A stretch of DNA of 63,437 nt from Schmidtea nova (lineage: Eukaryota): positions 380,060,564 to 380,124,000 of the forward strand of contig CM097883.1 of NCBI GenBank assembly GCA_044892505.1. Reading direction: 5' to 3'. Shown piece after piece: positions 1,222 to 61,838 of the stretch. The notes beneath the pieces were generated by a model, which did not search any database, was not told the origin of the DNA, and saw only the letters and a program-made list of their open reading frames with translations. The position numbers and the translations under genes are program-made. Within the stretch, counting starts at the first letter, position 1, and each line of letters starts with the position of its first letter.

Positions 1222-1351
1222 GTAGGCAGGGCGTATTGGCAAAGCATCAGTAGGTAGATGTGTGGAGCCGGGAACAAAGACATTATGACTCATGCGTGGG
1301 CGGAAAAAAACAAAGACCCCCCCCCCTCCCCAGGGGGTAGAAAAAATTTTT

Positions 1352-1415
1352 TGATGAGTCATCGATGAGTCATCGATGAGTCATAATTTTTTTTGATGAG
1401 TCATCGATGAGTCAT
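1352..1415. promoter_or_regulatory. Subterminal cluster of TGAGTCA (AP-1/bZIP consensus) in GATGAGTCATC repeats
   Basis: Five copies here, more in the mirror at 12397-12500. The motif match is direct; binding is only inferred. Confidence 0.5.
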
Positions 1416-1426
1416 ACTTTTTTTTC

Positions 1427-2385
1427 AAATTTTTTTTTCGCGCCAAAAACTTTTTTTCAAATTTTTTTTTCGCGCCAAAAAATTTTTTTCAAATTTTTTT
1501 TTCGCGCCAAAATTTTTTTTTCAAATTTTTTTTTCGCGCCAAAATTTTTTTTTCAAATTTTTTTTCGCGCCAAAAACTTTTTTTCAAATTTTTTTTTTCG
1601 CGCCAAAAAAATTTTTTCAAATTTTTTTTTCGCGCTAAAATTTTTTTTTCAAATTTTTTTTTCGCGCCAAAAACTTTTTTTCAAATTTTTTTTTTGCGCC
1701 AAAATTTTTTTTTCAAATTTTTTTTTCGCGATAAAAACTTTTTTTCAAATTTTTTTTTTGCGCCAAAATTTTTTTTTCAAATTTTTTTTTCGCGCCAAAA
1801 AATTTTTTTCAAATTTTTTTTTCGCGCCAAAATTTTTTTTTCAAATTTTTTTTTCGCGCCAAAAACTTTTTTTCAAATTTTTTTTTTCGCGCCAAAAAAA
1901 TTTTTTCAAATTTTTTTTTCGCGCCAAAATTTTTTTTTCAAATTTTTTTTTCGCGCCAAAAACTTTTTTTCAAATTTTTTTTTCGCGCCAAAATTTTTTT
2001 TTCAAATTTTTTTTTCGCGCCAAAAAATTTTTTTCAAATTTTTTTTTCGCGCCAAAATTTTTTTTTCAAATTTTTTTTCGCGCCAAAAACTTTTTTTCAA
2101 ATTTTTTTTTTCGCGCCAAAAAAATTTTTTCAAATTTTTTTTTCGCGCCAAAATTTTTTTTTCAAATTTTTTTTTCGCGCCAAAAACTTTTTTTCAAATT
2201 TTTTTTTTGCGCCAAAATTTTTTTTTCAAATTTTTTTTTCGCGCCAAAAAATTTTTTTCAAATTTTTTTTTCGCGCCAAAATTTTTTTTTCAAATTTTTT
2301 TTCGCGCCAAAAACTTTTTTTCAAATTTTTTTTTCGCGCCAAAATTTTTTTTAAATTTTTTTTTTCGCGCCAAAAAATTTTTTTC
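1427..2385. repeat. Tandem array of about 30-bp units, each containing TTTCGCGCCAAA (E2F-type double site)
   Basis: Unit T(n)CAAAT(n)CGCGCCAAAA repeated about 30 times, read directly from the sequence. Confidence 0.9.
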
Positions 2386-3025
2386 AAATTTTTTTTTTTA
2401 GACAAATTTTTTTAACACAAATTTTTTTTTTAGACAAATTTTTTTAGCCAAATTTTTTTTTAACACAAATTTTTTTTAAGACAAATTTTTTTAACACAAT
2501 TTTTTTTTTAGACAAATTTTTGAAGACATTTTTTTTTAACACAAATTTTTTTTGACAAATTTTTTTTGACAAATTTTTTAAGACATTTTTTTTTTTTCGC
2601 GCCAAAAAATTTTTAAATTTTTTTTTTAGACAAATTTTTTTAGCCAAATTTTTCAAGACAATTTTTTTATAATACAAATTTTTTTTTTAGACAAATTTTT
2701 TTAGCCAAATTTTTTTTTAACACAAATTTTTTTTAAGACAAATTTTTTTAACACAATTTTTTTTTAGACAAATTTTTGAAGACATTTTTTTTTAACACAA
2801 ATTTTTTTTGACAAATTTTTTTTGACATTTTTTTTAACACCAATTATTTTTTTTACAAAAATTTTTTTATTTAAGACAAATTTTTTATAACACAAAATTA
2901 GAGTCATCAAAAATATTTGCAACAGGTGTGCAAACTAAACAAAGACATTGTTGTATGTGTGCATGTTTAATTAATTAGTATTTGTCAAGTATGAAGCTTT
3001 TGCACATCAAAACCATCACAGAAGA

Positions 3026-3109
3026 GGTTCTGCTTCCAGGGTTCTGCTTCCAGGGTTCTGCTTCCAGGGTTCTGCTTCCAGGGTTCTGCTTCCAGGGTTC
3101 TGCTTCCAG
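3026..3109. repeat. 14-bp tandem repeat GGTTCTGCTTCCAG x6
   Basis: Read directly; two copies in the right TIR. Confidence 0.9.
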
Positions 3110-3189
3110 GGTTCTGATCGCAATGTTCTGCTACTAATGTTGTTATTTATTCAATTAATTATTTCACAAATTATTATTTTTCAAACTAA

Positions 3190-3390
3190 AAAAAGACTTT
3201 GCAACACGCGTGCAAGTTAACAAAGACATTGCAACACACGTGCAAGGACTTTGCAACACGCGTGCAACATGAACAAGGACTTTGCAATACACATGCAAAC
3301 TAAACAAGGACTTTGCAACATGCATGCAAACTAAACAAAGACATTGCAACACACATGCAACACTTTGCAACACATGTGCAACATAAACAA
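3190..3390. repeat. Degenerate tandem TTGCAACAC(G/A)-type repeats inside the TIR
   Basis: Repeated TTGCAA cores with AACAAAGAC/AACAAGGAC spacers; mirrored at about 11480-11680. Confidence 0.75.
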
Positions 3391-3415
3391 AGACATTAAA
3401 AAGCCAAAATAAAAT

Positions 3416-3760
3416 TTATTTATAAATATATTGTTGTGTGCGTGTACAAAATTTAGTTTCAAAATTATTTACATCTAAATTATTACTCGGAATATTACTC
3501 ATAGGAATATTATTCATTGTAATATTAGTATTTTTCGGAATATTATTCTTTGGAATATTTGACATCTTCTCCAACCGTATGGATGCCGATAACATCATTA
3601 TAATTATTAATATAAATAAACTTATATAATGTAATACAACTGATGTTTTTTCGTTTTCAACTGTTTGATTTTGGTATCTGACTTCATATTCTTTTTTAAC
3701 AAAGGTTTGATTGATACATTTTAATCGTTCAACTATTTTCATCATTATTTTGTTAATCAT
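3416..3760 (-). CDS. Tandem-duplicated stalk+TM segment with an Asn/Pro-rich cytoplasmic tail
   Basis: The first 58 or so aa are nearly identical to the C-terminal part of 3763-4161; the DNA at about 3590-3760 duplicates about 3765-3950. Confidence 0.55.
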   Translation of the reverse strand: MINKIMMKIVERLKCINQTFVKKEYEVRYQNQTVENEKTSVVLHYISLFILIIIMMLSASIRLEKMSNIPKNNIPKNTNITMNNIPMSNIPSNNLDVNNFETKFCTRTQQYIYK

Positions 3761-3762
3761 TT

Positions 3763-4161
3763 TTATAATAACATCATTATAATTATTAATATAAATAAAC
3801 TTATATAATGTAATACAATTGATGTTTTTTCGTTTTCAACTGTTTGATTTTGGTATCTGACTTCATATTCTTTTTTAACAAAGGTTTGATTGATACACTT
3901 TAATCGTTCAACTATTTTCATCATTATTTTGTTAATCATTTTTTCAATATCATTATTAATCACATTATTTTTGGAAGGACATTGATTACATTGTAATTTT
4001 ATTTGATTGCATTCAATGTTTGAGTAAAGACATATATCGTTATAGCTCGCGCAAGTACTATCTTGTTTTCGAAACGGATGAGATGATTGACAATCTTCCA
4101 AAGCTTGTTCTCCTTCAGTATTGTGAATACATAATAATAAAATAAGTATATTTAATTTCAT
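3763..4161 (-). CDS. Small predicted type I membrane protein, N-terminal part (signal peptide, Cys-rich domain, stalk, TM)
   Basis: Hydrophobic N-terminus MKLNILILLLC, six Cys in about 40 aa, C-terminal hydrophobic stretch VLHYISLFILIIIMMLL. Confidence 0.6.
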   Translation of the reverse strand: MKLNILILLLCIHNTEGEQALEDCQSSHPFRKQDSTCASYNDICLYSNIECNQIKLQCNQCPSKNNVINNDIEKMINKIMMKIVERLKCINQTFVKKEYEVRYQNQTVENEKTSIVLHYISLFILIIIMMLL

Positions 4162-4225
4162 TTTAAAAACAAAAACTAATATAAAAACTAAATTTGTTCA
4201 TACTAAAATATTTATTAAAAAACAA

Positions 4226-4642
4226 TTATGCGTATCTTGCATTGTCAACTCTCCAAATCGGAGTAACAACATCTTTTTTATCAATCTTGTATCCCTGGAT
4301 AATAATGGTAACGAACCAGTGTTCTTGATCCACGAAATCAATAGTTTGAAAAGCATCATGAAACCGAGTTTTTCTGTTATTGATGTACATGGTTTCTTTA
4401 CATGTCAAATTAACAATGATCTTTGAAAATAATCGATTTAATGCGATAATATCTTCCTTGGCAATAATTACAGCAAGACTGTCATATAAAGATTTTGTTA
4501 ACTTTACCGGAAATGATAATCGATACGGTATTTCATTAACCAAAAAATAAATTCTGCTGTCATAGTACATCTGAACTGGTTTTACCTCAGTCTGATATAT
4601 TTTTTCTTCGCTTATATCAAGATTTTGTTTTCGTGATTGCAT
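4226..4642 (-). CDS. Orphan family A protein (138 aa), homologous to 62249-62629
   Basis: Aligns by eye over its length with the 126-aa ORF at 62249 (e.g. IYFLVNEI..PVKL, TMYINNRKTRFHDAFQ vs TIYINNKKTYFHDTFQ). Confidence 0.8.
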   Translation of the reverse strand: MQSRKQNLDISEEKIYQTEVKPVQMYYDSRIYFLVNEIPYRLSFPVKLTKSLYDSLAVIIAKEDIIALNRLFSKIIVNLTCKETMYINNRKTRFHDAFQTIDFVDQEHWFVTIIIQGYKIDKKDVVTPIWRVDNARYA

Positions 4643-4882
4643 GTTGTGACAATATTTTATAAAATGTCTTTGTATTTATACTGATGACTGGATGTCTTTG
4701 TCCAATCATATTCATGCATTTGTTTTGCACACACTATGCACATGTATTGCAATGTCTTTGTTGTATGCGTGCATGTATAATTAATTAGTATGTGTTTAGT
4801 ATGAAGCTTTTGCACATCAAAACCATCACAGAATAGGTTCTGCTTCCAGGGTCCTGCTCCGAATGTCCGGTTACTAATGTCC

Positions 4883-4913
<31 letters not shown>

Positions 4914-5191
4914 TTTTATAATACTACTACTTTCTTTCTGAATAGTATTTAATAAAAAAAAAGTTTTTTAGCTTTTATATACAGTTAATAAAAAACTACT
5001 ACTACTTAAAATGCTTTAATAAAAAACTATTACTATTATTATTTAAATAAAAACTAAAATGAATAAAAAACTTTTATTTAACTAAAATGAAAATTAAAAA
5101 AACTAAAATGAATAAAAAAACTTTTATTCAACAAAAATAATAAAAATGACACAACAAATGACAACAACAACAACAACAACAACAACAACAT

Positions 5192-5746
5192 TCACATGTC
5201 CGATGGTTCACCGCGAAGAGATTGGCAACCATCATTATCATCACTATTATTCTCATCACCATCACAATCTTCTGCCTTTCGATGGCATTGCTTACAATCA
5301 GGAGATTGTGGCGATTCCAAACATTCATTGGATTCATCAGATGGAAACGGACCATCGAGTGTTGGTGCTTCCAAATCTGTTGTTGTTTTTTCATCTGCAT
5401 CAATCGGCTCCGGAGTAGAGTTGGGCCATGTTTCCTTGATATGGTCCTCCTCATCGATTTTGTCCATTTGCCGGACTTCGTATAATTTGAGGGAATTCCT
5501 CAAAACCCAAATGTTGAATTGGCGAATGCGTTCAACACAACTTCCGCATTGATATGCGCACATAATGTGTTCGGGTACCATTGGTAGATCGGTATTCTGG
5601 CTCGTCATGTGGTCCAGGACGATCTGGTTTATATCAATACCAGTCAGGACCATAATTTTATATGGGAACATCTCCGGAGCCGTGTAGACCAGAGCTGGCA
5701 TAAGATTTGGGAACAGTTCCTCCAGCTTCCTATATATTATGTTCAT
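5192..5746 (-). CDS. Orphan family B protein (184 aa, acidic low-complexity tail), homologous to 60412-60717
   Basis: VYTAPEMFPYKI..IDINQIVLDHM..CVERIRQFNIWVLRNSL aligns with IYFAPDIIPFRI..IDFNAVLLDHL..FVDRLKNYHVWILKNEL. Confidence 0.78.
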   Translation of the reverse strand: MNIIYRKLEELFPNLMPALVYTAPEMFPYKIMVLTGIDINQIVLDHMTSQNTDLPMVPEHIMCAYQCGSCVERIRQFNIWVLRNSLKLYEVRQMDKIDEEDHIKETWPNSTPEPIDADEKTTTDLEAPTLDGPFPSDESNECLESPQSPDCKQCHRKAEDCDGDENNSDDNDGCQSLRGEPSDM

Positions 5747-6016
5747 TAACTTTTCTAAATAAAAAAAAAATTAAATTTATTAAATAAATAATTAAAATCC
5801 TTACGGCTTTTAATTACGGTTTGCGTAAGAGACATATTAGTGAATATAAACTATTTGAGATTGTTCATAGTATATATATATATATCAAAGAAACACACAT
5901 GATTTGAAACACATATAATGAACCAATCAGAATCAAGCATGCACAACATGTCTTTATTCTATCGATACACACAGAGCCAATCAGAATCGTGCATTTCTAA
6001 TGCATAGATATTGCAA

Positions 6017-6550
6017 TCATGAGTCACGTGTTAGTATGAAATCAACAAAGGCTTTATCTTCTATAATTGATTTTATATCGTTAATAATATCATCAACTAT
6101 AGTACTATAGTCTTTGTTTTTTAATCCTAATATGACTAATTTCCCACTTGCAAATATATTTACACACATGGGATTATATTTGGTATATCTCAAAGCTGGA
6201 AATAATTCTGGCTCGTAAACACATGGTATTAATTTCGATAATTCATTCAAATTACAAATAAATCCTAAATCCGCAGTTACAGTTATCGATTGTATTGTTA
6301 AATCGTAAAACTCAACTTGTTCGTCACTAATAAATTCCCTGCATCCCATTATTCTATATCTTCCTGTTTTAAAGTATATTATTGGGTATTTCCCACTTCG
6401 ATCTACAATTTGCTGGGGTTTTCCTTTTGGAAATTTCATGTGTGATACATCTGTCTTACCTTTATAATTAATGTTTCTAATCATTACTGAAAATAATTTT
6501 AAAATGAAATAATTACTTTGAGAACTAGTATTTAAAACAAATATAAACAA
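6017..6550 (-). CDS. Divergent TATA-box-binding-protein-like protein (likely true start at Met 6484)
   Basis: C-terminal TBP repeat is clear: IQSITVTADLG..YEPELFPALRY..VNIFASGKLVILGLK (compare TBP YEPELFPGLIY..LIFVSGKIVLTGAK). The N-terminal repeat is degenerate: IRNINYKG..IIYFKTGRYRIMG. Intronless. Confidence 0.9.
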   Translation of the reverse strand: MFIFVLNTSSQSNYFILKLFSVMIRNINYKGKTDVSHMKFPKGKPQQIVDRSGKYPIIYFKTGRYRIMGCREFISDEQVEFYDLTIQSITVTADLGFICNLNELSKLIPCVYEPELFPALRYTKYNPMCVNIFASGKLVILGLKNKDYSTIVDDIINDIKSIIEDKAFVDFILTRDS

Positions 6551-6578
6551 TAATATTAAGAAAATATAATTTTTAAAT

Positions 6579-7202
6579 ATGGAATTAAGAAATGATGCAG
6601 TGTTTCAAATTGTTGGTTCGAGCGGGAGTGGAAAAACTTTATTTGTTTGTAAATTATTGCAATCGAAATTATTCAAATCAAAATTTAATAATATTTATTG
6701 GCATAGGGGTGCTGACGATGAAAGCGGAATGACACAAGATCAGTTTTGTAAAATAAAAATGACAATCATTAAAGGTTTCGATAAAAACTGGTCATCTAGA
6801 TTAAAACAAGGTGATGTGATTATCATTGACGACTTGTATCAAGAAGCAAATAAAGAAAAGGATTTCAATAACTTATTTACGAAAATCAGTAGACATAAAG
6901 GTGTTACTGTTATTTTTATAACTCAGAATTTATTTCATCAGGGCGGTAGTCATCGAACTCGTAATTTAAATGTTCAATATCTTGTTGTGTTTAAAAATCC
7001 TAGAGATGCAACAGTTATTGATTTTCTGGCAAGACAAGCTTATCCTTCTAATCGTAACTTTTTGATTGAAGCCTTTCAAGATGCTACAAAATCTCCTCAT
7101 GGATATATTTTCCTGGATTTTACTCAACAATGCAGTGATGATTTACGAGTTAGAACTGATATTTTTAACCCTGAAGGAGCCATGGTTTATAAACAAAGTT
7201 AA
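6579..7202 (+). CDS. A32/FtsK-HerA-like DNA packaging ATPase of Polinton type
   Basis: Walker A GSSGSGKT, Walker B VIIIDD, downstream ISRH..VTVIFITQNLF and YIFLDF motifs typical of Polinton ATPases; intact 207 aa. Confidence 0.92.
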   Translation: MELRNDAVFQIVGSSGSGKTLFVCKLLQSKLFKSKFNNIYWHRGADDESGMTQDQFCKIKMTIIKGFDKNWSSRLKQGDVIIIDDLYQEANKEKDFNNLFTKISRHKGVTVIFITQNLFHQGGSHRTRNLNVQYLVVFKNPRDATVIDFLARQAYPSNRNFLIEAFQDATKSPHGYIFLDFTQQCSDDLRVRTDIFNPEGAMVYKQS

Positions 7203-7222
7203 ATTGATTTACAGTAATAATA

Positions 7223-7549
7223 ATGTTAATGAAATCTCGAGTAAAGTTTGAGCCATTGATAAAGGCTAGAACAAAGAAAGTGGGAAAGAAAACAAAGAAA
7301 CTATTTACAAAGAAATCTATAAATAAATCAAGAATGAAATTAAAAAAGAAATCAAGATCCAAGAAAATAAATATGGATAATATTCCCAAAAATAATTTGA
7401 AATCTAATGCTAAACAAGTACATCATCGGAGTTTACCATTTTTTAATGCATTACTTAAAGCCCCCTCAGTTAGAAGAATGGGTATTCTTCAATCGTTTCC
7501 TAGTTACGTCATCGATGATTTACTCGCTATTTTAATTAAAGTCGCATGA
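7223..7549 (+). CDS. Basic (Lys-rich) putative core/DNA-binding protein, probably C-truncated
   Basis: Very Lys/Arg-rich N-terminal half. The C-terminal FFNALLKAPSVRRMGIL..VIDDLLAIL resembles, from memory, the small ORF that follows the ATPase in invertebrate Polintons. It ends abruptly where pPolB begins. Confidence 0.5.
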   Translation: MLMKSRVKFEPLIKARTKKVGKKTKKLFTKKSINKSRMKLKKKSRSKKINMDNIPKNNLKSNAKQVHHRSLPFFNALLKAPSVRRMGILQSFPSYVIDDLLAILIKVA

Positions 7550-9758
7550 CGATCACTGCGACCCAACAGCGAGAATTTGATAATAGCACTAATTGCTATT
7601 TATGTAAAAAGCTTTTAAATACGCCTGTTAGGGATCACGACCATTTCACCGGTCTTTATATTGGAGCAGCCTGCTCAGAGTGCAACAAGTCCCGGCAAAT
7701 AAGACACTCTTTGCCCGTTATATTTCACAACTTGAAGGGCTACGATTTACACCACATTTTAAAATACGGCCTTTCAAAATATAACACGTGGAATATAAGT
7801 TGTATTCCCTTGACCAGCGAAAAGTCTTTAAGTCTTTTCGCGTACATCGATAGCCTGACTGTAAAATTTATCGACTCGTATCAGTTTGTAAGTGAGTCTC
7901 TAAATAACGCGGTAAAAACCCTTACTTCGTTACCTTTGACAAACTCGGAATTTCGCGGCACTATAGTCACGGCCAAGGGCATCTTTCAATACGACGCTGC
8001 CACTTCTTTAGAGGTTTTAAAATCTACATTGTGTTTACCACCCAAGTGGAAAGATATAACTGCTGTCGAGTATGCTGCTGCCCATAAAATATGGCAAGAA
8101 ACCTCATGTACATCACTGTACGATTACATGATGGTTTATTTAAAACTAGATGTGTTTTTGTTAGCTGACTATTTTCAGCAATTTCGAATTAAATCTATTA
8201 ATCATAACAGGCTTGAGCCTTTAAATTTTCTCGGAATTCCCGGCATGTCGTGGAGTTCCGCTTTATTAACTCTTGACTCTCCTATCGAGCTCCTCACCGA
8301 TATGGAGATGTATAACTTTTTCGAGGGCGGTATTCGCGGCGGACTTACGTTTGTCAATAAACATTATGTCAAGACGAGCCCGGATACCGCACTATTATAT
8401 ATTGACATAAATAATTTATATGGGTGGGCCTTAAGCCAACCCTTGCCATGTGGTAATTTTGAGTGGGTCACTGATGACCAATTATTAAATGAAATCGTTT
8501 GTCAGTGCTCATCGGAAAATCTCGATACACTTCATTATGGTTACACCATAGAAGTGGATTTGGAAATTCCGGCATCGATTCACGACAAACTGGATGATCT
8601 TCCAGTTGCCGCTGAAAAGATGTGTGCACCGGGATCCAAGGTTGAGAAGCTGTTGCTAACGCATCTTCCAAAGAAGAATTATGTTCTTCATTGGCGGCTT
8701 TTGCAACTATTTATTAAAATTGGTGTGAAGGTAACACACATACATCGCGAAATTAAATATAATCAAGAAAAAATCTTTTTTAATTATATAAACATAAACA
8801 CCAGTTTACGAGCGGCTGCTACTAACAAGCTCGACAAAAATTTTTACAAACTATTAAATAATAGTCTCTACGGCAAAACTGTAGAGAACTTAAAAAAAGA
8901 ATAAATTTAAGACTGTGTAACTCGGCACAAAAACTGCTGACTTACACGTCAAAAGCTAATTTTAAAAAAACTAACAAAATCGACAGTGACCTCATCTCCG
9001 TATTGCTTCAGAAGGAATCAGTATGTTTGGATAGACCCAGCTACATTGGACAAACCGTACTGGATTTATCCAAACTTCGTATGTACCAGCTGCAGTATGA
9101 AGAGTTACAAAAATATCGTAACGACTTCAACTGCGAAATTAACATCGTTGCTGGGGATACTGATTCCTTCTTCTTGGAAATCAAAAATCTGCCTTTGAAC
9201 ACTCTTTTGACCGCCATGATTCGCGATAGGCTTTTGGATACCTCTAATTACGACACTCATCATGCATTGTATAGTAGGACCCTTGATTCTGTGATTGGTA
9301 AATTTAAGGATGAGAATAAGGGTCTACTGTATGATGAGTGGGTTTTCTTAAGACCTAAATGTTATAGTTTGATGGGAGACGAGGCCTGCATGAAAGCCAA
9401 GGGGATCTGTTTAAAAGATGCAGGTCTCACTCATCAGTCTTACCTTGACTGTTTTTTAAACGACAAAATATACAATGTCCCCCAGTTCCGCATTACGAGC
9501 AAAAACCATCAGCTCTTTAGTATAAAAAGTAATAAGAGGGCCTTATCCTGTAGGGATGATAAGAGGAACTGGGTGGAAAAAAATAAAAGTTTTTTGTATG
9601 ACCACTATATGGGGGGTGACACCACTATATTTGTAGGTGATCGAGAGCCGCTTCAACAACAGCAACAACAACAGCTTCAACAACAGCTTCAACAACAACA
9701 ACAACAAGATGACCCCTACGATTTCTATGACCCGACGGCTCGGGATTATTTCGGATGA
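7546..9758 (+). pseudogene. polB: Protein-primed family B DNA polymerase with an endonuclease-VII-like His-Me finger; N-truncated, one frameshift at about 8890-8900
   Basis: CYLC..RDHDHFTG..AACSECN; exonuclease motifs FHNLKGYD, FIDS and YLKLDV; IRGG; motif A DINNLYG; motif B KLLNNSLYGK; motif C GDTDS. ORFs 7546-8904 and 9003-9758 join if one A is added to the A-run near 8890-8897. Confidence 0.93.
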
Positions 9759-11431
9759 TGGCAAGAATGCTGATGACAAGGAGGAGAAAGATGATAAGAA
9801 TGACATGGAAAAAATAAAAACCAAAAAAAAAAAGAAAATCAAAAACCAAAAAGATATGAGAATGAACAATCGGCCCTCTTCAGGGCCACAATTTATGATT
9901 GTATTACAAATAATAAAAAGTTTTAGAAAATTTAGCTCACCGAAAACAGAAAAGAAAACAGAACGCAAAAAAAAAAAAAAAAATAAAAAAATAAAAGATT
10001 GAGAAAACCGAAAACTGAAAGGAAACCAATATTGATAATTAACCGAAAATGAAAAGAAACAAATTATGAAAAGAAACAAATTATGAAAATAAAACGAAAA
10101 TGAAAATAAACCGAAAAGATAAAAGAAAACAGAAAACAGAAAACAGATTGTGCACGAAATAATGGCCCTCTTTAGGGCCAATACATTTTGATTGTAATAA
10201 ATTGCGCAATCAATTAAAACTAATGAATTATTTTTATGTTATTTTTTTATATGTTATTATTTTTACTTTTTTATAAGTTCTTTTTATAAGTTCTTTTTAT
10301 NNNNNNNNNNNNNNNNNNNNNNNNNNNNNNNNNNNNNNNNNNNNNNNNNNNNNNNNNNNNNNNNNNNNNNNNNNNNNNNNNNNNNNNNNNNNNNNNNNNN
10401 NNNNNNNNNNNNNNNNNNNNNNNNNNNNNNNNNNNNNNNNNNNNNNNNNNNNNNNNNNNNNNNNNNNNNNNNNNNNNNNNNNNNNNNNNNNNNNNNNNNN
10501 NNNNNNNNNNNNNNNNNNNNNNNNNNNNNNNNNNNNNNNNNNNNNNNNNNNNNNNNNNNNNNNNNNNNNNNNNNNNNNNNNNNNNNNNNNNNNNNNNNNN
10601 NNNNNNNNNNNNNNNNNNNNNNNNNNNNNNNNNNNNNNNNNNNNNNNNNNNNNNNNNNNNNNNNNNNNNNNNNNNNNNNNNNNNNNNNNNNNNNNNNNNN
10701 NNNNNNNNNNNNNNNNNNNNNNNNNNNNNNNNNNNNNNNNNNNNNNNNNNNNNNNNNNNNNNNNNNNNNNNNNNNNNNNNNNNNTATTACAAGTATTTAT
10801 AATAATTATTATTATAATTATTATTAATATTATCATTAATATTAATATTATTATTACAAGTAATTATAGNNNNNNNNNNNNNNNNNNNNNNNNNNNNNNN
10901 NNNNNNNNNNNNNNNNNNNNNNNNNNNNNNNNNNNNNNNNNNNNNNNNNNNNNNNNNNNNNNNNNNNNNNNNNNNNNNNNNNNNNNNNNNNNNNNNNNNN
11001 NNNNNNNNNNNNNNNNNNNNNNNNNNNNNNNNNNNNNNNNNNNNNNNNNNNNNNNNNNNNNNNNNNNNNNNNNNNNNNNNNNNNNNNNNNNNNNNNNNNN
11101 NNNNNNNNNNNNNNNNNNNNNNNNNNNNNNNNNNNNNNNNNNNNNNNNNNNNNNNNNNNNNNNNNNNNNNNNNNNNNNNNNNNNNNNNNNNNNNNNNNNN
11201 NNNNNNNNNNNNNNNNNNNNNNNNNNNNNNNNNNNNNNNNNNNNNNNNNNNNNNNNNNNNNNNNNNNNNNNNNNNNNNNNNNNNNNNNNNNNNNNNNNNN
11301 NNNNNNNNNNNNNNNNNNNNNNNNNNNNNNNNNNNNNNNNNNNNNNNNNNNNNNNNNNNNNNNNNNNNNNNNNNNNNNNNNNNNNNNNNNNNNNNNNNNN
11401 NNNNNNNNNNNNNNNNNNNNNNNNNNNNNNN

Positions 11432-12597
11432 ACAACAATATATTTATAAATAAATTTTATTTTGGCTTTTTAATGTCTTTGTTTATGTTGCACATGTGTT
11501 GCAAAGTGTTGCATGTGTGTTGCAATGTCTTTGTTTAGTTTGCATGCATGTTGCAAAGTCCTTGTTTAGTTTGCATGTGTATTGCAAAGTCCTTGTTCAT
11601 GTTGCACGCGTGTTGCAAAGTCCTTGCACGTGTGTTGCAATGTCTTTGTTAACTTGCACGCGTGTTGCAAAGTCTTTTTTTAGTTTGAAAAATTATAATT
11701 TGTGAAATAATTAATTGAATAAATAACAACATTAGTAGCAGAACATTGCGATCAGAACCCTGGAAGCAGAACCCTGAAAGCAGAACCTCTTCTGTGATGG
11801 TTTTGATGTGCAAAAGCTTCATACTTGACAAATACTAATTAATTAAACATGCACACATACAACAATGTCTTTGTTTAGTTTGCACACCTGTTGCAAATAT
11901 TTTTGATGACTCTAATTTTGTGTTATAAAAAATTTGTCTTAAATAAAAAAATTTTTGTAAAAAAAATAATTGGTGTTAAAAAAAATGTCAAAAAAAATTT
12001 GTCAAAAAAAATTTGTGTTAAAAAAAAATGTCTTCAAAAATTTGTCTAAAAAAAAATTGTGTTAAAAAAATTTGTCTTAAAAAAAATTTGTGTTAAAAAA
12101 AAATTTGGCTAAAAAAATTTGTCTAAAAAAAAAATTTGTATTATAAAAAAATTGTCTTGAAAAATTTGGCTAAAAAAATTTGTCTAAAAAAAAAATTTAA
12201 AAATTTTTTGGCGCGAAAAAAAAAATTTGAAAAAAAAATTTTGGCGCGAAAAAAAAATTTGAAAAAAATTTTTTGGCGCGAAAAAAAAATTTGAAAAAAA
12301 TTTGTCTAAAAAAAAAAATTTGAAAAAAATTTTTGGCGCGAAAAAAAAATTTGAAAAAAAATTTTTGGCGCGAAAAAAAATTTGAAAAAAAAAGTATGAA
12401 TCATCGATGACTCATCAAAAAAAGTTTGACTCATCGATGACTCATCGATGACTCATCGAAAAAAATTATGACTCATCGATGACTCATCGATGACTTATCA
12501 AAAAAAATTCTACCCCCCGGGGGGGTCTTTGTTCTTTTTTTTCCGGCCACGCATGAGTCATAATGTCTTTGTTCCCGGCTCCTCACATCTACCTACT
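11432..12597. repeat. Right terminal inverted repeat (visible part)
   Basis: Mirror of 1249-3437. About 5 copies of the GGCGCGAAA unit versus about 30 on the left; 2 versus 6 copies of the 14-mer GGTTCTGCTTCCAG. Confidence 0.92.
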
Positions 12598-12662
12598 AGC
12601 ATCCCATTAATAAAATAATTTAGTTAATATAAGAAATAGTTAACGGGGTTTATCTTTTACAG

Positions 12663-13605: not shown

Positions 13606-13768
13606 CATATCATAATTATCTTTTTTTCACCTTTGATCTTTTTTATTATTATTATCAATAATTCCCATAATGATGACTATAGATCAAAATTGTTTTTTAT
13701 AAACAATAACACAATATTTCGGCACAGCCTTTATCAAGTGTGTATTTTGATCTATAGTCATCATTATG
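13240..13768. repeat. (AAT)n microsatellite-associated repeat of about 190 bp in inverted/tandem copies, forming a hairpin centred at 13427-13434
   Basis: CAATATTTCGGCACAGCCTTTATCAA-loop-TTGATAAAGGCTGTGCCGAAATATTG, with arms of about 90 bp. Partial copies at about 45270-45327 and 61185-61250. Confidence 0.8.
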
Positions 13769-13931
13769 NNNNNNNNNNNNNNNNNNNNNNNNNNNNNNNN
13801 NNNNNNNNNNNNNNNNNNNNNNNNNNNNNNNNNNNNNNNNNNNNNNNNNNNNNNNNNNNNNNNNNNNNNNNNNNNNNNNNNNNNNNNNNNNNNNNNNNNN
13901 NNNNNNNNNNNNNNNNNNNNNNNNNNNNNNN

Positions 13932-14374
13932 TTTTTGACAAAACGCAACAATGTTTCGAAGATTCTACTATCCAGAACAGCCCTTTCATTGGACAATGTC
14001 TTGAACATTACAAGAGGAGAGTGAGGATCAATCATAAAATTATTGTAAATTGCAAGACCAAACAATCTACCGATCACAGTAAACTGGGTTAAAATGTCAT
14101 CAAATATCATTTTGTTCACCCAGCAGAGTCTTGATTCAGGATACATTTCAAAGAGACCATAATCAAAGAGACCATAACTCTGCAACTGGCTAATGGTATC
14201 ACCTAGCAAATTATCTCTTCGTACAGTAGTATGAGAACTGCTTTGTGCTACGAAGCATGGTAAATCTTCTGACATTAAGCATTGAGCATCAATTTTCATC
14301 GACATAACATCACTATTGCTGTCATTGAAATAACCGTTGTAATGATTCTCTGAATTTCTTCCACATTCGATCAA
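13932..14374 (-). pseudogene. Second, internally deleted copy of the HECT fragment
   Basis: Same peptide as 15016-15639 without the RASQCHLK..VLNP segment. Confidence 0.8.
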
Positions 14375-15581
14375 GAACTAAATAGCCAACTTCCTAAATC
14401 CAAACCGAAACTAAAATTTCACTAATTCCACATCAAAAAATCCAAACTGAATTGATTGGTTTAAACAAATCTAAAATTCAACAATTACTCAAAATTCACT
14501 ATTCTAAAAAATCAATTCAATTCAATCTAAAAAAAACCAAACCCAAGAACTTACCGATTACACTCACACCAAAGGTGAGAAAAGGAACGCGCACACAGAC
14601 GCGATTAAGAAAATTATGAAACCCAAGCGGTAAAAATGCGCACACAGACGCGACACTACAAAAATATGAAATAACACGACAAAAAATAGCCAAAGTTTGC
14701 TCAGGCAAACTTTGGCTGAAACATTTTTTCATGTTGCCTGAACAAACTTTGGCTGTTTTGTTTTTGCTGCATGTATTTTTCAGTTTATAGCGTCTGTGTG
14801 CGCTACCACCAATTGATCAGCGTCTGTGTGCGCATTTTTTAATTGGAGTTATTTTGGATAGGTAAATTTGTAATTTGGAGTTTAATTGATTTTTTAGAAT
14901 AGTGAATTTTGAGTAATTGTTGAATTTTAGATTTGTTTAAACCAATCAATTCAGTTTTGGATTTTTTTTTGATGTGGAATTAGTGAAATTTTAGTTTCGG
15001 TTTGGATTTAGGAAGTTGGCTATTTTGTTCTTGATCGAATGTGGAAGAAATTCAGAGAATCATTACAACGGTTATTTCAATGACAGCAATAGTGATGTTA
15101 TGTCGATGAAAATTGATGCTCAATGCTTAATGTCAGAAGATTTACCATGCTTCGTAGCACAAAGCAGTTCTCATACTACTGTACGAAGAGACAATTTGCT
15201 AGGTGATACCATTAGCCAGTTGCAGCGTGCTTCTCAATGTCACCTTAAAAGGCCATTTAGAGTTAATCTCATTTGTGAAGATGCTTTAGATGAAGGCGGG
15301 GTAATGAAGGAATTGGTCTTGCTTGTTGTGCCTCAAGTTTTAAACCCCGATTATGGTCTCTTTGAAATGTATCCTGAATCAAGGCTTTGCTGGTTGAACA
15401 AAATGATATTTGATGATAATTTACCGCAGTTTAATGCAATCGGTAGATTGTTTGGTCTTGCAATTTACAATAATGTTATGATTGATCTTCACTCTCCTCT
15501 TGTAATGTTCAAAACATTGTCCAATGAAAAGGCTATGCTAGATAATAAAATCCTCGAAACATTGTTGCGTTTTGTCAAAAA
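13932..15581. mobile_element. Foldback (long inverted repeat) carrying a HECT E3 ligase fragment in both arms
   Basis: 13932-14530 is the reverse complement of 14870-15581, with SNPs and a deletion of about 120 bp in the left arm. The centre has smaller palindromes. Confidence 0.75.
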
Positions 15582-15584
15582 CAA

Positions 15585-15616
<32 letters not shown>

Positions 15617-15639
15617 ATAATAATAATATAAAATGGTGA
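15016..15639 (+). pseudogene. HECT-domain N-lobe fragment, HERC3/4-like
   Basis: VRRDNLLGDTISQL..LKRPFRVNLICEDALDEGGVMKEL..LNPDYGLF..GRLFGLAIYN. It lacks the catalytic C-lobe and runs into an (AAT)n tract. Confidence 0.85.
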
Positions 15640-18793: not shown

Positions 18794-21192
18794 CGTGATC
18801 GGATTATTGCCCACACGAAAAATGCCCACACGAAAAATGCCCACACGAAAATTGCCCACAGAAAATTGCCCACAGATAGTATTGCGCACACGATTAATGC
18901 CCACACAGAATAATGCCCACAAGGAAAAATGCCCACATAGACAAATGTCCACATAGAAAAATGCCCACAAGGAAAAATGCCCACATAGAAAAATGCCCAC
19001 ACGAAAAATTATTTTAAATATAAAAATTAAATTAAAATAAATAGAGAAAAAATCAAAAATTATATTCTATCTTGGAGATAATCTATTTGTGAAAATTTGT
19101 GAATATATAAAAAAACAATTATAAGGTATGTAATATTTAAATTCTCTTTTGTTAATATAATATTAAATTGCGTAGTATAGTATTTAAATTTATAGTTTTG
19201 GGAAATACATAGATTGAAAATTTGTGAATATATAAAAAAACAATTATAAGGTATGTAATATTTAAATTCTCTTTTGTTAATATAATACTTTTGATACCAT
19301 AATTTTCTAACGATATTTTTTTAAATATTTTAATAGGTCTGAGAATGGAATATTCTAGTACGCAGAGAGGCAATCGAGTTTTAATTTACTCTGGGTTTGA
19401 GTATATCTATTTCCGTACAACAAATGGAGTTTTGACTTGGAGATGCAGGCAACATCGCATTATAAACTGTCATTCCATCATAAAAACTAAAGATGGCAAT
19501 ATTGTAAATCAACCAACGCAACATTGCCATGAATCATGACCACAAAAAATAGAATGCAATTTAGCAAAGAAAAAAATCCAGGATGAGATGACATCAATTG
19601 GTGCTACTCCTAGAAATGTAATGGGGAGTATTTTATTAGAAGTGAGCAGTGAAGCACTAGCGTTTATGCCGAAAAAAACTTCAATATCACGAAATCTACT
19701 GAATTTTAGAAGAGATAAACATTTACCAGTACCTAAAGATACAAATTTTGAAATTCCAGATAAATACACCGAGCTAGTGCTTCATGATTCAGGTGCAAGT
19801 GATCCAGACAGAATTCTGGTTTTAGGAGATATTTATCTCTTAAAAGAATTAAATAAAGATATAATATTCGGAGATGGAACTTTTGATAAAGTTCCAAGCA
19901 TGTTTTATCAACTTTATACTTGGCATGCTCAGTTGGTAATTCTTATCCACCTTGTAAATATTTTTTGTTAAAAAAACGGAGATACATACAAAAAAATGTT
20001 TGATATATTAAAGAACTTGCTATCAAATTTGGCACCTGAAAGAATATTACTAGATTTTGAGAAAGCAGCGATGAATGCAGCCAGAATTGCATTTCCACAG
20101 ACTGATATGAGAGGCTGTTATTTTCATTTGGCCCAAAGTATAACAAGAAAAATTAGTTCTGTTGGTCTAAAAACTACTTTTGAAAACAACCTGGATATGA
20201 AACTAAAGCTGAAATCATTAGCAGCATTGTCATTTGTGCCTCCATCTGATGTTAGATCAGTATTTACTAAGCTTGCAGCAACTTATTCGGAAGAAGAGAA
20301 TTATAGTGAAATACTGACATATTTTTTTGGCACATATATTGAGGGTGCAGCTGGTAGAAATCCGCTGTTCTCTATTGAATTGTGGATTCATTATGATTCA
20401 GCTTTGGAGAAATCACCGAAAACAACGAATTGCTGTGAGGGATTTCATAATGCATTGAATTCTTTATTCCACTGTAGTCATCCCAGCATTTGGTTTCTAT
20501 TTGATGGATTGCAACGAGATATAGCTTGCCATAGATTGACACTAGCTAACGCAGAAACGGGTCGTCCTGAAATTAAAAATAGGAAATACCAAAAATTAGC
20601 TGATTCGGTATCTACTATTGTGCAACAATATAGTACAACAGAAGATAAAATTGTATACTTAAGAAAGTTGGCTAATTTACAATAAATTTAAAATGTATAT
20701 TTGTATTAAGTAGAAGTAGAATATAATGAATTAAAATTTTTATTTTTTAAAAACAATTTTTTTAATCTCCTTTTCACTATTTTTTTAAACACTGATGTAT
20801 TGTATCGTATAGTAGCAAAGCGATCTTAAGTATTTTAAATATAAAAATGATTTTAAATTGTAAAATTTGTAAATTTATTGTTGATACATTTTAATATTTT
20901 ATTTTAAATCACTTATAGATTATCTCCTAGATAGAATATAATTTTTGATTTTTTCTCTATTTATTTTAATTTAATTTTTATATTTAAAATAATTTTTCGT
21001 GTGGGCATTTTTCTCTGTGGGCATTTTTCCTTGTGGGCATTTTTCTATGTGGGCATTTGTCTATGTGGGCATTTTTCCTTGTGGGCATTATTCTGTGTGG
21101 GCATTAATCGTGTGCGCAATACTATCTGTGGGCAATTTTCTGTGGGCAATTTTCGTGTAGGCATTTTTCGTGTGGGCAATAATCATCGAATC
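18794..21192 (+). mobile_element. Mutator-like (MULE) DNA transposon
   Basis: TIRs of about 300 bp made of GCCCAC repeats. 9-bp TSD CTAAATTCT (18785-18793, 21193-21201). Confidence 0.9.
19345..20685 (+). pseudogene. FLYWCH + MULE transposase, with an in-frame TGA at 19537 and a frameshift at about 19930
   Basis: FLYWCH-like LIYSGFEY..WRC..C..HCH; DGTF; LLDFEKA; GCYFHLAQ; TTNCCEGFHN. Confidence 0.9.
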
Positions 21193-42480: not shown

Positions 42481-45335
42481 TAGAATCTCATCAATGAAAT
42501 ATCCTTCTAAGTAAACCCTGCAATTAGGATCAAAGAAAATACTGAATCTGGAACAAAATACACAAAATGAGGTTAGCCAAAAATTGCACACTTATCCACA
42601 GAAATAATGACAAAATTTCGTTCACAACACCCAGTCTCACTCAATTAATCCTAGACACTTACCTGAGTGTTGATTATGCTATGACGATGAATAAAATCTT
42701 ATTAATATTTTTAATTTTCGTCACTTAATATTTTATTCAATTTCAAATATTTCAGTTATTATAGGACTACAGATTAAATTTTTTCATTTGGAACTGAATT
42801 TTCGGATCATGAAAACAACTACCGAAAATTCATGTGTCGGTGAAAAAACTTTGATCTAGTCTTAAAAAAATAAAAAATATCTAAAATTAATAATATACAT
42901 ATATTGCTGACAAATATGGACAAAAAAATAAATGAAACACACAAGCAAAGGACGTCGTATTAAAATACATTTGCAAAATGTCAATATTTTTAATCTTCAT
43001 CATAAATAGAGCACTCTTTAACGAATTTAATAGCTGCAGGTGTGAGGTGTTTTCAGATGAGAACTAAATATTTCAATGATTTATTAAAATAATTTGAAAT
43101 GATAAATAATTCAATTTTAATAAGTTTTAAAATAATTGTTATAATTAATGTGTGTTTAAATTTTTATAATTTTTATAATTTGCAATTTTTATTTTTAAAG
43201 TTTGTAATTTGAAGAGATGAAATAAATAATTAAATTTTAATAAATTATAATTTTATAAAAAAAATTTCTACATTTAAATTTATAAATTGTTTTGAAAATA
43301 TTTTGTTCAAAGCTGAAAATTTATTTGAAAATTATATAATATTTCATAAAATAAAAACTTGGAATTATGACTTCAACTTCTCAACCTGATTAAGAAAATA
43401 ATTTAGAAGATGTTCTAGCAACATCTAATATGTCTATGGCGTCAATGGAATTCTTCATAAAGAAGCTATTTTCAAGCGATTTCTATAGGGTAAATGACGT
43501 TGAGACATTCAATAAAGGATATGATAAATATTTTAAAGTCTACTTCAAAACAAGAGGTCAAATTACTGATCAACAAAAGTATTCAATAAATATATAAATG
43601 AGATGATCCAAATATTACATGGAACAAGGAGAGATTGCAGAAGGCATTCGTCAAAAAAAATAATGTTGGCAGAAGATTTACAATCGGCTATGTCCTAAAG
43701 ACAGACAAGCGAGGAGCCTGAAAAATTTTTTTTTCTTCGACCAAACTGACAATTCGATGTTGTTTCCGTGTCGCTTTCATCGTTTTTCAGCTTGTAAACA
43801 AATTGATTATGTTTCCTAACTTGAGATGAAATTAGATTATGAATTTCAGTAATTTGATTTTTTGTTTATTGGAATTTGCTACAATTCGATTTAATTCATC
43901 CGCGTTTTTCGTAATTTGATTTCATCTCGGGTTTCCCTTTGTTCAGTCTCTCCAATAGCCCGGATCTCACATGCATTCGGGCTCCGCCTTGACTCGGGTT
44001 TTCTATATAATAATTCACTTCATGCGCAGTCTCTACATACTATGTCATCGTTGCTCTAAAACGAATATCAAATGGGTCCATGTAGAAAATATTGATATGG
44101 TAAATACAAACCAGACAAAAAGAGGTGTAATATACTCAAGTAATCAGAATGACCAATAATTTGGACATTATAATTATTAAATACTTATTTATGTTTATTT
44201 TTTAATTTTTTTAATGTTGTTTATTATGTAAAAATTTATGACAAAACATTAAAAGGAGATTCCTTTGGTCAGATATTTGAGTATACTTCTTGCGCGGTCT
44301 ATTCATGATATGTTTACGCTTGCTTCCAAATAGATGAAATTTAGATTTTGCCAACAATATTAATAATAATTATTTTTTTTTCGTTATCATTATAGTTATT
44401 ATTGGTTTTCGCGTGTAGGATTAATCTATCAGCATTTAGAATCTAGTTACCAGTAAAAGTTGACTTTTTGTTGTAAGTTGCCAGCTTGCAAGTTAACGTT
44501 GACTTTCGTTCAGAAACATCATCACGATTGATATAACATTGATAAAAATCTGTTACCTTATTTTAATAAACTCTGCTTTAATGAACTCTATTTTAATAAA
44601 CTCTGCTAACGACAAAACAANNNNNNNNNNNNNNNNNNNNNNNNNNNNNNNNNNNNNNNNNNNNNNNNNNNNNNNNNNNNNNNNNNNNNNNNNNNNNNNN
44701 NNNNNNNNNNNNNNNNNNNNNNNNNNNNNNNNNNNNNNNNNNNNNNNNNNNNNNNNNNNNNNNNNNNNNNNNNNNNNNNNNNNNNNNNNNNNNNNNNNNN
44801 NNNNNNNNNNNNNNNNNNNNNNNNNNNNNNNNTTTTATGAATTTCTTTATGCAGATATATAGTAAGAGTCACGCTTATAATTATCAACAAAACCACATTT
44901 AATTCTTTAATCGATTATTTGCATTTTTACGCACATTCAATGGGAATGATCACACCTGAGAGCACACTATTGTTTTTCCCCGACAACCTTTGGTGAAAAT
45001 CAATGACTGAACTTAATATTATATGAAATAAATAATATTAAGCTTTTATGTTGATTGTTTGTCTAGTTTTTGGCAGTATTGAATGATCCACTTTAAAAAA
45101 ATCGAAATGAAGAACTAAAAATTAAAGTTAGACAAATAAGTGGGGTTTTGGGATTGGAAATGAAACTAAATTTATAAAATCACAATTATCTTTTGATTTC
45201 ACTTTTGATCTCTTTTTATTTATATCAATAATTTCCATAATGGTATGATTATAGAATAAAGTTTTTTGGTTGTTAAGTACCCAATATTTCGGCACAGCCT
45301 TTATCGAGCTTGTATTGATAAAGGCTGCTCTACAG

Positions 45336-48125: not shown

Positions 48126-48767
48126 ATAATTGATATAAATAAATTTATAAAGATAGACAAATTTATTTAATCTACATAATCACCATATATTGAATACATT
48201 TTATTATTTTCACAAGCTCTTTCCAGGCAGTACTGTAACATCTGGAATCAGTAAAACATTTCCCAATTTATAGCAATGTATAAAAACTAATCGCAAAATA
48301 ATTAATAAAAAATCGTCATTATGATGCGAAAATTCGCCTATAAATATTTTTAACAGTAGACTGGAAAAAAGACATATTACGTAATCGATAAGTCATGGCC
48401 AATCAAGATCAAGTATACCCCCGAGGGGTACTTTTTTTGCGACCCCCCATAATTTTTTTTGCGAACCCCCCCATAAAATGTTTTTTACACACACACAAGC
48501 GATGAGTCATAAAAAATTATTTTTAATTTTTAAGGACATTTTAAGGACAAATTATGAGGTCAACTTAAGTTTAAATAATGAGGTCAACTTAAGGTCAACG
48601 TGAGGTCAAATAATGAGGTCACATTAGGGTCAAATTCATAATTTTTAAGGTCAAACTTTTAAAACTTTTTCAAAAATTCAAAAATTTTCAAAAACTCAAG
48701 AATTGATTACAACATTTATTAATAATACATTAAAGATATATTAAGCGATTCTAGCGCTATTGATTTT

Positions 48768-49148
48768 CTAAATCGGAGACACTGCTTCTTTTGGATCTAC
48801 TTTATATCCTTGAATCGATATATCAATAAACCAATTTTCATTGTCCATAAACTGAATGGATTGAAATGTGTCATGGAAGTAAGTTTTCTTGTTGTTGATA
48901 CATATTGTTTCACCTCAAGATAATTTCTTGTTGATTTTCATCAACACTTTATTGATTGCAACAACATCTTCTTTATAAAGCTGACCAATTAAATTTGAAT
49001 ATTGCGAAGTCGACAGCTTTACCGGATTTGGGACCTTGAAAAAGATTTCATTTACCAAGAAAAATATTTGGTAATCGTGAAGGATCTGAACAGGTCGTAA
49101 AACAAATTTGTTTTGAATTGATTTGGTATCGTTCTTAACTGGTTTCAT
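48768..49148 (-). pseudogene. Orphan family A copy in the left TIR arm, with a premature stop
   Basis: Mirror of 62249-62629; a TGC codon is replaced by TGA at about 48915. Confidence 0.75.
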
Positions 49149-50202
49149 TTTAACTGAATCTTTAATTGGACTCGATTTGCTGAAAAGATTTTACATTTTA
49201 TATGAAATTATTGTAAGTTTATATCATTATTATTGGTTTTATTGCACTTGTGATGTTTTGAACTTTTGTTGTATTAGACCTTTGTTGTTTTTTGTTGATA
49301 TTATTATTATTATCATCATTATTATTATTATTACTAGTATGGATATATTTCTTTTTATTATTGTTTTCTTAAGTATTATTATTATTATTATTATTAATCT
49401 TTTACAAAGTATTATTATTATTATGATTATGATTATGATTATTATTATTATTTTCTTAAGTATTATTATTACTATTTTTCAAAGTTTTATTATAATTATA
49501 ATTATTACTATTATTATTAATATTTCTACTATTAATATTATTATATTTCTACTATAATTAATATTTTCAAAAGAAATATTGATCTTATTTTTTAAGTATT
49601 ATTATTATTAACTAAGTAATTGTAAGGTGCCTAAGGCGCACGTTGACAAATCATAAAATAAACGAACAATTTGATGTACGAAATTTTATTAAAAAATTTT
49701 TTTTTTATTTTTAAGCAATTGAAAATTATTTCTGTTATATATATGGAATGGCAAAAAAATTGTTTTTATTGAAGAACGTCTTGTAAAACTACATTCCGTG
49801 TGAATTGTCTTTGATCATTCAATAAATTTCCCTGCTGTAGATTCGATTCAATAAGCACCTTCACTTGACTTGCAACTCTTGATTAATTTTTAATTTTTAT
49901 TTTGTAAAATAAACTTAGAAAGCGCTGTTTAAAACTTGTTAATCGTGTAAAAAATCTATGTTAGTATTAGTAGTTCAAAAAAAATTATGATAGTGTTAGA
50001 ATCAAGCAATCCGCGAGCGTTATAGAATCAGTGAAACAGCGAATCAGTGAATCAGTGATGAGCGTAATTATATATTAGATTATTAATACTACTAATATTT
50101 ATATATTTCTTATTATTACAGTGATGTTCAATAATTAACCTTGTTTAAATATTATCAAGTTGGCACTGTTTTAAAAATATATATTTAATTTGTTAAATTG
50201 TT

Positions 50203-54400: not shown

Positions 54401-54557
54401 GAAGGAGGGAATCCAATATGAAGGACCTTACAAAATTTTAAAATTCTTATCACCAAGACAAGTTGAATTACAATTTCCAAACTCAATCAAATCAAGAAGA
54501 ATTGAATGGCTGAAGAGATTCAAAGAAAATGAAGAGGAGGAGAGTGATGTTCAATAA
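51365..54557 (+). pseudogene. pol: Pol (PR-RT-RH-IN) broken by two frameshifts (about 53620 and 54250)
   Basis: Protease LWDSGA; RT YLDD; RNase H TDAS..E..TDH; integrase CKIC, VDI, TDRG, NGLAER; C-terminal YEGPY (GPY/F). Confidence 0.93.
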
Positions 54558-56340: not shown

Positions 56341-56615
56341 GGCTTTCTTAAGGAAATTTATGATATTAGTGGAAATTTGAGTTATCGATTCGCCTCATGA
56401 ACTAAATCCTTCATCTTTACGCTATTTCTACTCTCTGGTTGTCCTCTCTACTCACCACTCTATCGTCCTCATTAACGTGAACCTGTTAGTATTTTAATAT
56501 TCCCGGTTACATATGACTACTTAGGTTAAAAAGATGAACGCAACACATGCAACGAAATGAACACGGGCTTAGTATATTTTTAACTACAACACTTTACACA
56601 AACTGCAGGTGGTGA

Positions 56616-61748: not shown

Positions 61749-61838
<90 letters not shown>

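Follow-up and report, generated by a model that had tools for sequence, protein, structure and literature searches.

In beta- and gammaherpesviruses, which are nuclear double-stranded DNA viruses without an RNA polymerase of their own, a mimic of the TATA-binding protein (TBP) serves the late genes, whose promoters carry a non-canonical TATA box (PMC4893493, PMC7498053, PMC12529657). This mimic (BcRF1/ORF24/UL87) is a large protein with a barely recognisable TBP fold, which acts in a six-protein complex and binds RNA polymerase II (Pol II) directly. Large and giant DNA viruses with TBP-like proteins encode their own RNA polymerase. TBP is, to our knowledge, outside the usual core gene set of Polintons, and we know of almost nothing on gene control in Polintons and adintoviruses. 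Here we describe a Polinton-type element in a stretch of 63,437 nucleotides of Schmidtea nova (contig CM097883.1, positions 380,060,564 to 380,124,000; hereafter the window, in which all coordinates are given) that encodes a TBP-family protein of 155 amino acids (aa), named mini-TBP in this article. The features of the element are collected in Table 1 (see below).

Sequence and structure comparisons have both been employed to identify mini-TBP. The Pfam family TBP (PF00352) matches residues 62-126 with 51.2 bits (E 1.2e-13; cut-off 22.9), a single TBP repeat being detected in this way, and phmmer against the PDB returned TBPs only, with a best E of 3.8e-17. The AlphaFold2 model built on the family alignment shows the TBP saddle with a mean predicted local distance difference test (pLDDT) score of 91.6 and a predicted template-modelling (pTM) score of 0.83. 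In the Foldseek comparison of this model with the PDB, all 44 of the 44 matches at E<=1e-3 were TBP chains, with TM scores of 0.57-0.69 over 164-187 aligned columns, and a match of this length therefore involves both halves of mini-TBP. The TBP fold, which a preliminary description of this DNA had read from the letters and left to structure searches, is thus established. The same description had placed an intronless TBP-fold gene at 6017-6550. The open reading frame (ORF; minus strand), the fold and the lack of an intron stand, while the start has to be moved from the TTG at 6550 to the Met at 6484, the equivalent of which begins 40 of 40 relatives. The alignment of these 40 proteins, which are 36-59% identical to the window protein, contains 19 invariant and 13 nearly invariant columns, and the window gene is collinear with them from start to stop without intron or interruption. 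As the window protein deviates at 3 of 42 highly conserved columns, compared with a family median of 2, this copy is not decayed.

The two halves of the protein differ in character. By DSSP the C half of the model consists of a strand, a helix, four strands and a long helix, which is a full repeat, and it carries the invariant EPE.F stirrup together with Phe 95 and Phe 111. Comparison with the preliminary description, which had called this repeat near-canonical with both DNA-kinking phenylalanines kept, bears out each point: the motifs quoted there are found in the translation, the repeat is full by Pfam and by the model, and F95 and F111 are invariant among the 40 relatives. The N-terminal repeat had been called shortened, and in the model it has four strands and no helix while remaining collinear with TBP repeat 1. 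In hhalign against canonical TBPs (probability 98.5), residues 15-123 cover strands S2-S5 of repeat 1, a gap at helix H2 and then repeat 2, and with archaeal as well as eukaryotic TBPs the mini-TBP profile matches the second repeat more closely than the first. Because of this collinearity with repeat 1, the gap at H2 and the better match to repeat 2, the comparisons indicate descent from a two-repeat TBP, the first repeat of which lost its helices H1 and H2. The profile scores against archaeal, microsporidian, plant, yeast and human TBPs show little difference.

The DNA-facing phenylalanines of the first half were followed in the alignments. In repeat 1, the invariant Phe 38 corresponds to the second of the kink phenylalanines, and opposite the first the alignments show a gap or Pro 23, itself invariant. 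Five residues upstream of Pro 23 stands F18, nearly invariant, which pairs with the Tyr preceding EPELF. Three of the four kink phenylalanines are retained and the fourth is probably lost. The conservation is not confined to the C half, as N4, I5, N6, Y7, P23, F38, G41, R44, M46 and G47 in the N half are invariant or nearly so. Cellular TBP uses the acidic EPE.F stirrup for TFIIB, as seen in TBP-TFIIB structures (e.g., 1vol and 1c9b). None of the stirrup residues of mini-TBP (E91, P92, E93 and F95) varies among the 40 proteins, which at the level of sequence predicts a contact with TFIIB.

Comparison with cellular TBP/TRF and archaeal TBP (PF00352) reveals a significant sequence and fold match, collinearity and a complete second repeat. 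Mini-TBP differs from cellular TBP in a repeat 1 that is about 25-30 residues shorter and devoid of H1 and H2, in probably having one kink Phe fewer, in the absence of an N-terminal tail from the window protein, in an identity of 29-35% (across 70-81% of the mini-TBP length) and in being encoded by a mobile virus-like element. Because two complete repeats are absent (the N half is helix-free, the H2 region is gapped and Pfam finds one repeat), mini-TBP is filed as a divergent subgroup of the TBP family and not as a canonical TBP or TRF. The best viral fold matches were TBP-like proteins of large and giant DNA viruses (E 9e-8 to 1e-4, TM 0.5-0.73), comprising mimivirus-, phycodnavirus-, marseillevirus- and asfarvirus-like B263R homologues and iridoviruses. 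They have the TBP fold in common with mini-TBP but are longer (about 190-550 aa) and only 8-20% identical, with no match at the sequence level, and unlike these viruses the element of the window has no RNA polymerase of its own. The herpesvirus TBP mimic may be the closest functional analogue of the much smaller mini-TBP, solely in the way the two would work; its Foldseek match is weak (E 2.8e-3, TM 0.39) and is to be read as analogy, not membership.

Mini-TBP belongs to a family that is well represented in public data. A word-indexed search returned 42 compact relatives with 35-72% identity from metagenomes and SRA assemblies and none from an annotated NCBI genome, and all 56 database matches of this search carry PF00352. 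In an exhaustive profile search with clustering at 50% identity, E<=1e-30 was reached by 71 clusters and E<=1e-10 by 664, ordinary TBPs being among the latter. Judged from these profile matches, the compact architecture is common to at least 71 clusters. In the 79 representatives with both motifs, the N-terminal NINY and EPELF are separated by a median of 97 residues; in canonical TBP this spacing is, by our estimate, roughly 120 residues. Most members have a length of ~145-160 aa without any activation-type extension. Long Ser/Thr-rich, acidic C-terminal tails were observed in a few members (P0034-P0036, P0071 and P0072; 220-275 aa in total) and not in the window protein, and such tails are possible activation or regulatory extensions.

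The setting of the gene in the relatives is that of the same kind of element. On their contigs (L001, L002 and L005-L010) the TBP gene sits among genes for a protein-primed type B DNA polymerase (pPolB), an rve integrase and an A32 ATPase, and this setting holds on 3 of 3 independent long contigs examined. The gene therefore extends beyond the single copy seen in the preliminary description, as a compact family that recurs on unrelated contigs in one kind of element. The window copy has ORF X, TBP, ATPase and PolB in common with the long-contig relatives. One type of relative, of ~16 kb and recovered from many samples, contains a Bcl-2 gene (40.2 bits). Bcl-2 homologues are named as adintovirus accessory genes in PMC8502044, and the relatives of the window element thus resemble adintoviruses in adding both an rve integrase and Bcl-2. 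The search with the ATPase found hundreds of metagenome and SRA relatives. Two TBP/ATPase pairs share the value of the longest contig (3793; 5945), which hints at adjacency of the two genes in further lineages.

Some members of the family have been labelled TBP by JGI automatic annotation. The label 'TBP' was also given to a gene of a midsize PolB virus or element by Starrett et al. 2021 (PMC8502044, Fig. 5 legend; bioRxiv 10.1101/697771, legends). In these legends the 'TBP' gene of the midsize linear dsDNA (MELD) virus appears as a label, without architecture, distribution or promoter, and the gene so labelled may or may not belong to the mini-TBP family. In the literature we found no paper on a Polinton TBP, on the compact architecture, on its spread or on a promoter word (see below) beyond such figure-legend labels. 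The preliminary description was right in placing TBP outside the usual Polinton core set and overstated the novelty of the find, given the large public family, the JGI labels and the legend of Starrett et al. The family is nevertheless both large and almost undescribed.

The upstream regions of the genes were surveyed for common words in the window element and in L001, L002 and L005, all four of which bear TBP. Within 70 nt upstream of start codons, no 7-mer was more enriched than TATAAAC. It lies on the sense strand 33-42 nt upstream of a called ATG in 19 of its 38 occurrences, where 0.23 were expected (P 2e-32), and at the placed sites the word is followed by A in 18 of 19 cases, with A again at the second base in 16 of 19. 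Outside the element, none of the 17 occurrences in the window is placed 33-42 nt before an ATG. On the ATPase side and the structural side of the gene set, the extended word, TATAAAC(AA), precedes the ATPase, the small ORFs after the ATPase, an ORF of ~409 aa and ORF X, though in the window copy ORF X does not have it. In the four genomes TATAAAC was not found before the TBP, Bcl-2 and PolB genes. The integrase gene has it at 33-42 nt in 0 of 3 relatives, L002 showing one occurrence 94 nt upstream. No paper was found that links the word to Polintons, and from the sequences surveyed we regard TATAAAC(AA) at fixed spacing as a new observation.

Two further words were observed. The CCAAT-box-like CCAATCAGAA adjoins the TBP gene in 3 of the 4 genomes (at ~5692 in L001 and ~6164 in L002), with 0.02-0.04 expected per locus, and it is a possible host-factor promoter for the class of genes that lacks TATAAAC. 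The 11-nt unit GATGAGTCATC is arrayed at both termini of the element (1353-1405 and 12406-12488) in 7 exact copies, where 0.03 were expected, and occurs nowhere else in the window; its core TGAGTCA is a bZIP site of the AP-1/GCN4 type. A word related to it, GATGACTCATC, stands before the TBP gene of L002. A scan of the region for bacterial promoters and terminators gave no signal above shuffled sequences, which is irrelevant for a eukaryotic element.

We propose that mini-TBP is a minimal TBP in the gene set of one Polinton/adintovirus-like lineage and that it serves the TATA-type promoters of the element itself through host Pol II, a proposition to which we assign a probability of about 0.5. 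Its action on these promoters finds indirect support in the conserved TATAAAC(AA) at fixed spacing. Mini-TBP would be made from a separate CCAAT/TATA-like promoter served by the host and would then bind the TATA-type promoters of the element. In canonical TBP-DNA structures (1ytb and 1cdw), the two halves of the box are covered by different repeats, the 5′ half by the C-terminal and the 3′ half by the N-terminal one, and both structures are among the PDB matches of mini-TBP in Foldseek. By analogy, mini-TBP would place its canonical C-terminal half over the canonical TATA and its remodelled N-terminal half over the unusual 3′ half (..AACAA). Host Pol II would be recruited through the TFIIB-type contact at the conserved stirrup, while cellular regulators that dock on the repeat-1 helices would be avoided. 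The binding to the word, the contact with TFIIB and a temporal order, in which the genes behind the word would follow mini-TBP, are what we infer.

Several points weigh against this proposal. TATAAAC was seen in four genomes, all of them TBP-bearing, which amounts to co-occurrence only, and host TBP alone could serve the TATAAA core. The N half, probably short of one kink Phe, may bend TATA DNA in an altered manner or fail to do so. Moreover, the window copy lacks most of the genes that such a factor would serve. A bolder version, on which our confidence is tentative and falls well short of even, holds that these proteins of one and a half repeats are smaller than any other known TBP and widespread in an animal-associated Polinton/adintovirus lineage, and that together with TATAAACAA ~35 nt before the ATGs of the ATPase and the structural side they would form a self-contained early-to-late switch on host Pol II, the first half-saddle reading the non-canonical 3′ half and escaping the regulators of repeat 1.

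The state of the window copy leads to the alternative that survives best, namely that here, and only in this copy, mini-TBP is an inert passenger whose ORF is intact merely through young insertion. This would fit any function of the family, and we consider it quite plausible, with a likelihood somewhat under one half. The integrase and the entire morphogenesis block are absent and PolB has a frame break, is N-terminally short and is inverted, a state that the preliminary description had overlooked. The insertion appears recent, because the arms of the terminal inverted repeats (TIRs) are 95-99% alike. The window element is defective, so that its mini-TBP gene may be idle. On the other hand, the ORF of mini-TBP is complete, with the start codon of the family and ordinary deviations at conserved columns, and the adjacent ATPase is intact too, with the promoter word in place.

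According to another explanation, mini-TBP is a decoy or shut-off factor that occupies host TATA boxes or sequesters TFIIB and so damps the transcription of the host or of competitors. Partners that need the repeat-1 helices could not be engaged, and the genes of the element would not be activated. The loss of both these helices, with the TFIIB-type stirrup still invariant, agrees with such a role, as does the lack of an activation-type extension in most members. We nevertheless regard it as unlikely, since a lineage-specific TATA-type word at fixed spacing before the element's own genes suits a positive factor better, the phenylalanines of the DNA face are conserved, and a remodelled but strongly conserved N half would be needless in a decoy.

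It is less probable still that mini-TBP has an architectural role in replication or packaging and not in transcription, in which it would bend DNA at the termini or together with the ATPase beside it. Such a role would account for the adjacency to the packaging ATPase in the window and for the same divergent unit in L005-L010, and it could draw on the weak similarity in fold to rolling-circle initiators (E about 1e-2) and on the dense repeat arrays at the termini. The order of TBP and ATPase is, however, not fixed, as four to five small ORFs lie between the two genes in L001 and two in L002. Every strong match is to a transcriptional TBP, the TFIIB-type stirrup is invariant, and the terminal arrays resemble bZIP sites and not TATA boxes.

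A recent retrocopy of host TBP caught in the element, which would explain an intronless gene with a TBP-like second repeat and which the preliminary description had named, in the form of a decaying retrocopy present only here, as fatal to its view, is hardly credible and was rejected, since identity to canonical TBPs is 29-35% as against 35-72% to compact relatives and since the compact architecture recurs in at least 79 representatives, with the same kind of element on unrelated contigs.

If mini-TBP does serve the promoters of its own element, this would be the second independent case among nuclear DNA viruses, after the herpesvirus mimic, of a self-supplied promoter-recognition factor for host Pol II. 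A self-encoded TBP with a shared promoter word offers a concrete and checkable model of temporal control in widespread virus-like elements. Mini-TBP is also a natural deletion of TBP in which the DNA-facing sheet is kept and the repeat-1 helices are lost, and it can help to separate the parts of TBP required for recognising DNA from those required for regulation.

Table 1. Features of the Polinton-type element, in window coordinates.
Feature	Position	Strand	Basis or remarks
Polinton-type element, internally deleted and rearranged copy	1249-12597		TIRs, termini, target-site duplication, pPolB, A32 ATPase, relatives
Left target-site duplication, AGCATC	1243-1248		
Left TIR	1249-3437		With 11-nt GATGAGTCATC units (1353-1405) and 32-nt array (1418-2397)
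ORF X, 138 aa	4226-4642	-	Conserved beside TBP gene in L001 and L002; one copy per inner arm in the second element (44865-63437)
Acidic ORF, 184 aa, paired CxxC	5192-5746	-	Weak match to 150-aa ORF after TBP in L005
CCAAT-box-like word CCAATCAGAA, two copies	5923-5986	+	Between TBP stop and start of 184-aa ORF
Mini-TBP gene, 155 aa, intact	6017-6484	-	Pfam, phmmer, family alignment, AlphaFold2, Foldseek, hhalign
Complete second TBP repeat (Pfam residues 62-126), S1-H1-S2-S3-S4-S5 then H2	6107-6301	-	Pfam, alignment, model
Reduced first repeat (residues 1-55), four strands, zero helices	6320-6484	-	Model, hhalign
Divergent TBP/ATPase intergenic region, 94 bp between start codons	6485-6578		
Promoter word TATAAACAA	6542-6550	+	37 nt before ATPase ATG
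A32/FtsK-type packaging ATPase, intact	6579-7202	+	Pox_A32 30.7 bits; 88% identity to nearest database relative
Promoter word TATAAAC	7188-7194	+	35 nt before ATG of next ORF
ORF of 108 aa, truncated gene	7223-7549	+	Only the last third resembles the first ~40 residues of the relatives' 104-111-aa ORF
pPolB, broken	7546-9758	+	Pfam DNA_pol_B_2 95.3 bits; two matches in two frames
Two N runs inside the element	10301-10784, 10870-11431		
Right TIR	11432-12597		Inner edge against N run, true inner limit hidden
Right target-site duplication, AGCATC	12598-12603		

The element itself begins with AGTAGG at 1249 and ends with CCTACT at 12597, i.e., it has AG..CT termini. Polintons with such termini and a 6-bp duplication were reportedly described by Kapitonov and Jurka in 2006. 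The inverted arms 2543-3437 and 11432-12270 continue outward via repeat arrays. In the left TIR the 32-nt tandem array has ~31 copies, and in the right TIR (12160-12426) it is far shorter, because of which the two arms differ in length. The earlier picture of a Polinton bounded by target-site duplications, with the TBP gene head-to-head with the packaging ATPase, agrees with the TIRs, with AGCATC on both flanks, with the short distance from start to start and with the Pox_A32 match. The likeness to Polintons and adintoviruses thus consists in pPolB, the A32-type ATPase, long TIRs, AG..CT termini and a 6-bp duplication. Unlike them, the window copy has no integrase, capsid-size ORFs or protease: an rve integrase was not found within 1249-12597 by Pfam or tblastn, and ORFs of capsid size or for a protease were not found by comparison with the relatives. 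Because the integrase is absent here and present in L001, L002 and L005-L010, the window copy is best read as a deletion derivative of an integrase-bearing element.

The pPolB of the window has one change of reading frame, which is either a frameshift or an unrecognised intron. It is N-terminally shorter than the 802-1191 aa of the relatives, and with respect to the ATPase it points the other way than in 3 of 3 relatives. Its N-terminus (7546-7700) is Cys-rich and resembles Endonuclease VII at a score below threshold (22.3 bits, with 23.6 required). Pfam on the other ORFs of the element and on the large ORFs of the relatives returned only ATPase, PolB and Bcl-2, the relatives' ORFs of about 330-410 aa being without Pfam matches. 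The 184-aa acidic ORF downstream of TBP recalls the 'Oncoid' class of Starrett et al., although an LxCxE motif was not seen in it. At 3416-4161 on the minus strand lie two adjacent ORFs of 114 and 132 aa, which have a duplicated 179-nt unit in common, and one of them is rich in Cys, begins like a signal peptide and ends in a hydrophobic tail.

Other mobile sequences were observed elsewhere in the window. A second, hollowed element of the same kind occupies 44865-63437 and runs past the end of the window. It has nested inverted arms (48418-49279/62118-62979 and 44865-45101/63201-63437) with a copy of ORF X in each inner arm, contains no TBP, ATPase or PolB, and two other elements have inserted into it, a hAT transposon at 45772-47804 and a Ty3/gypsy retroelement at 50203-54277. 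At 18823-21178 lies a small DNA transposon of the MULE type, the TIRs of which measure 270 nt (98%) and the transposase of which is split (MULE domain, 30.8 bits). Finally, an exon of a HECT-domain gene is present as an inverted duplicate, at 13697-14374 on the minus and 15016-15639 on the plus strand, with a 0.5-kb spacer and an N run that masks part of it; the arrangement reflects an artefact of the assembly or else a host gene that has undergone local inverted duplication.
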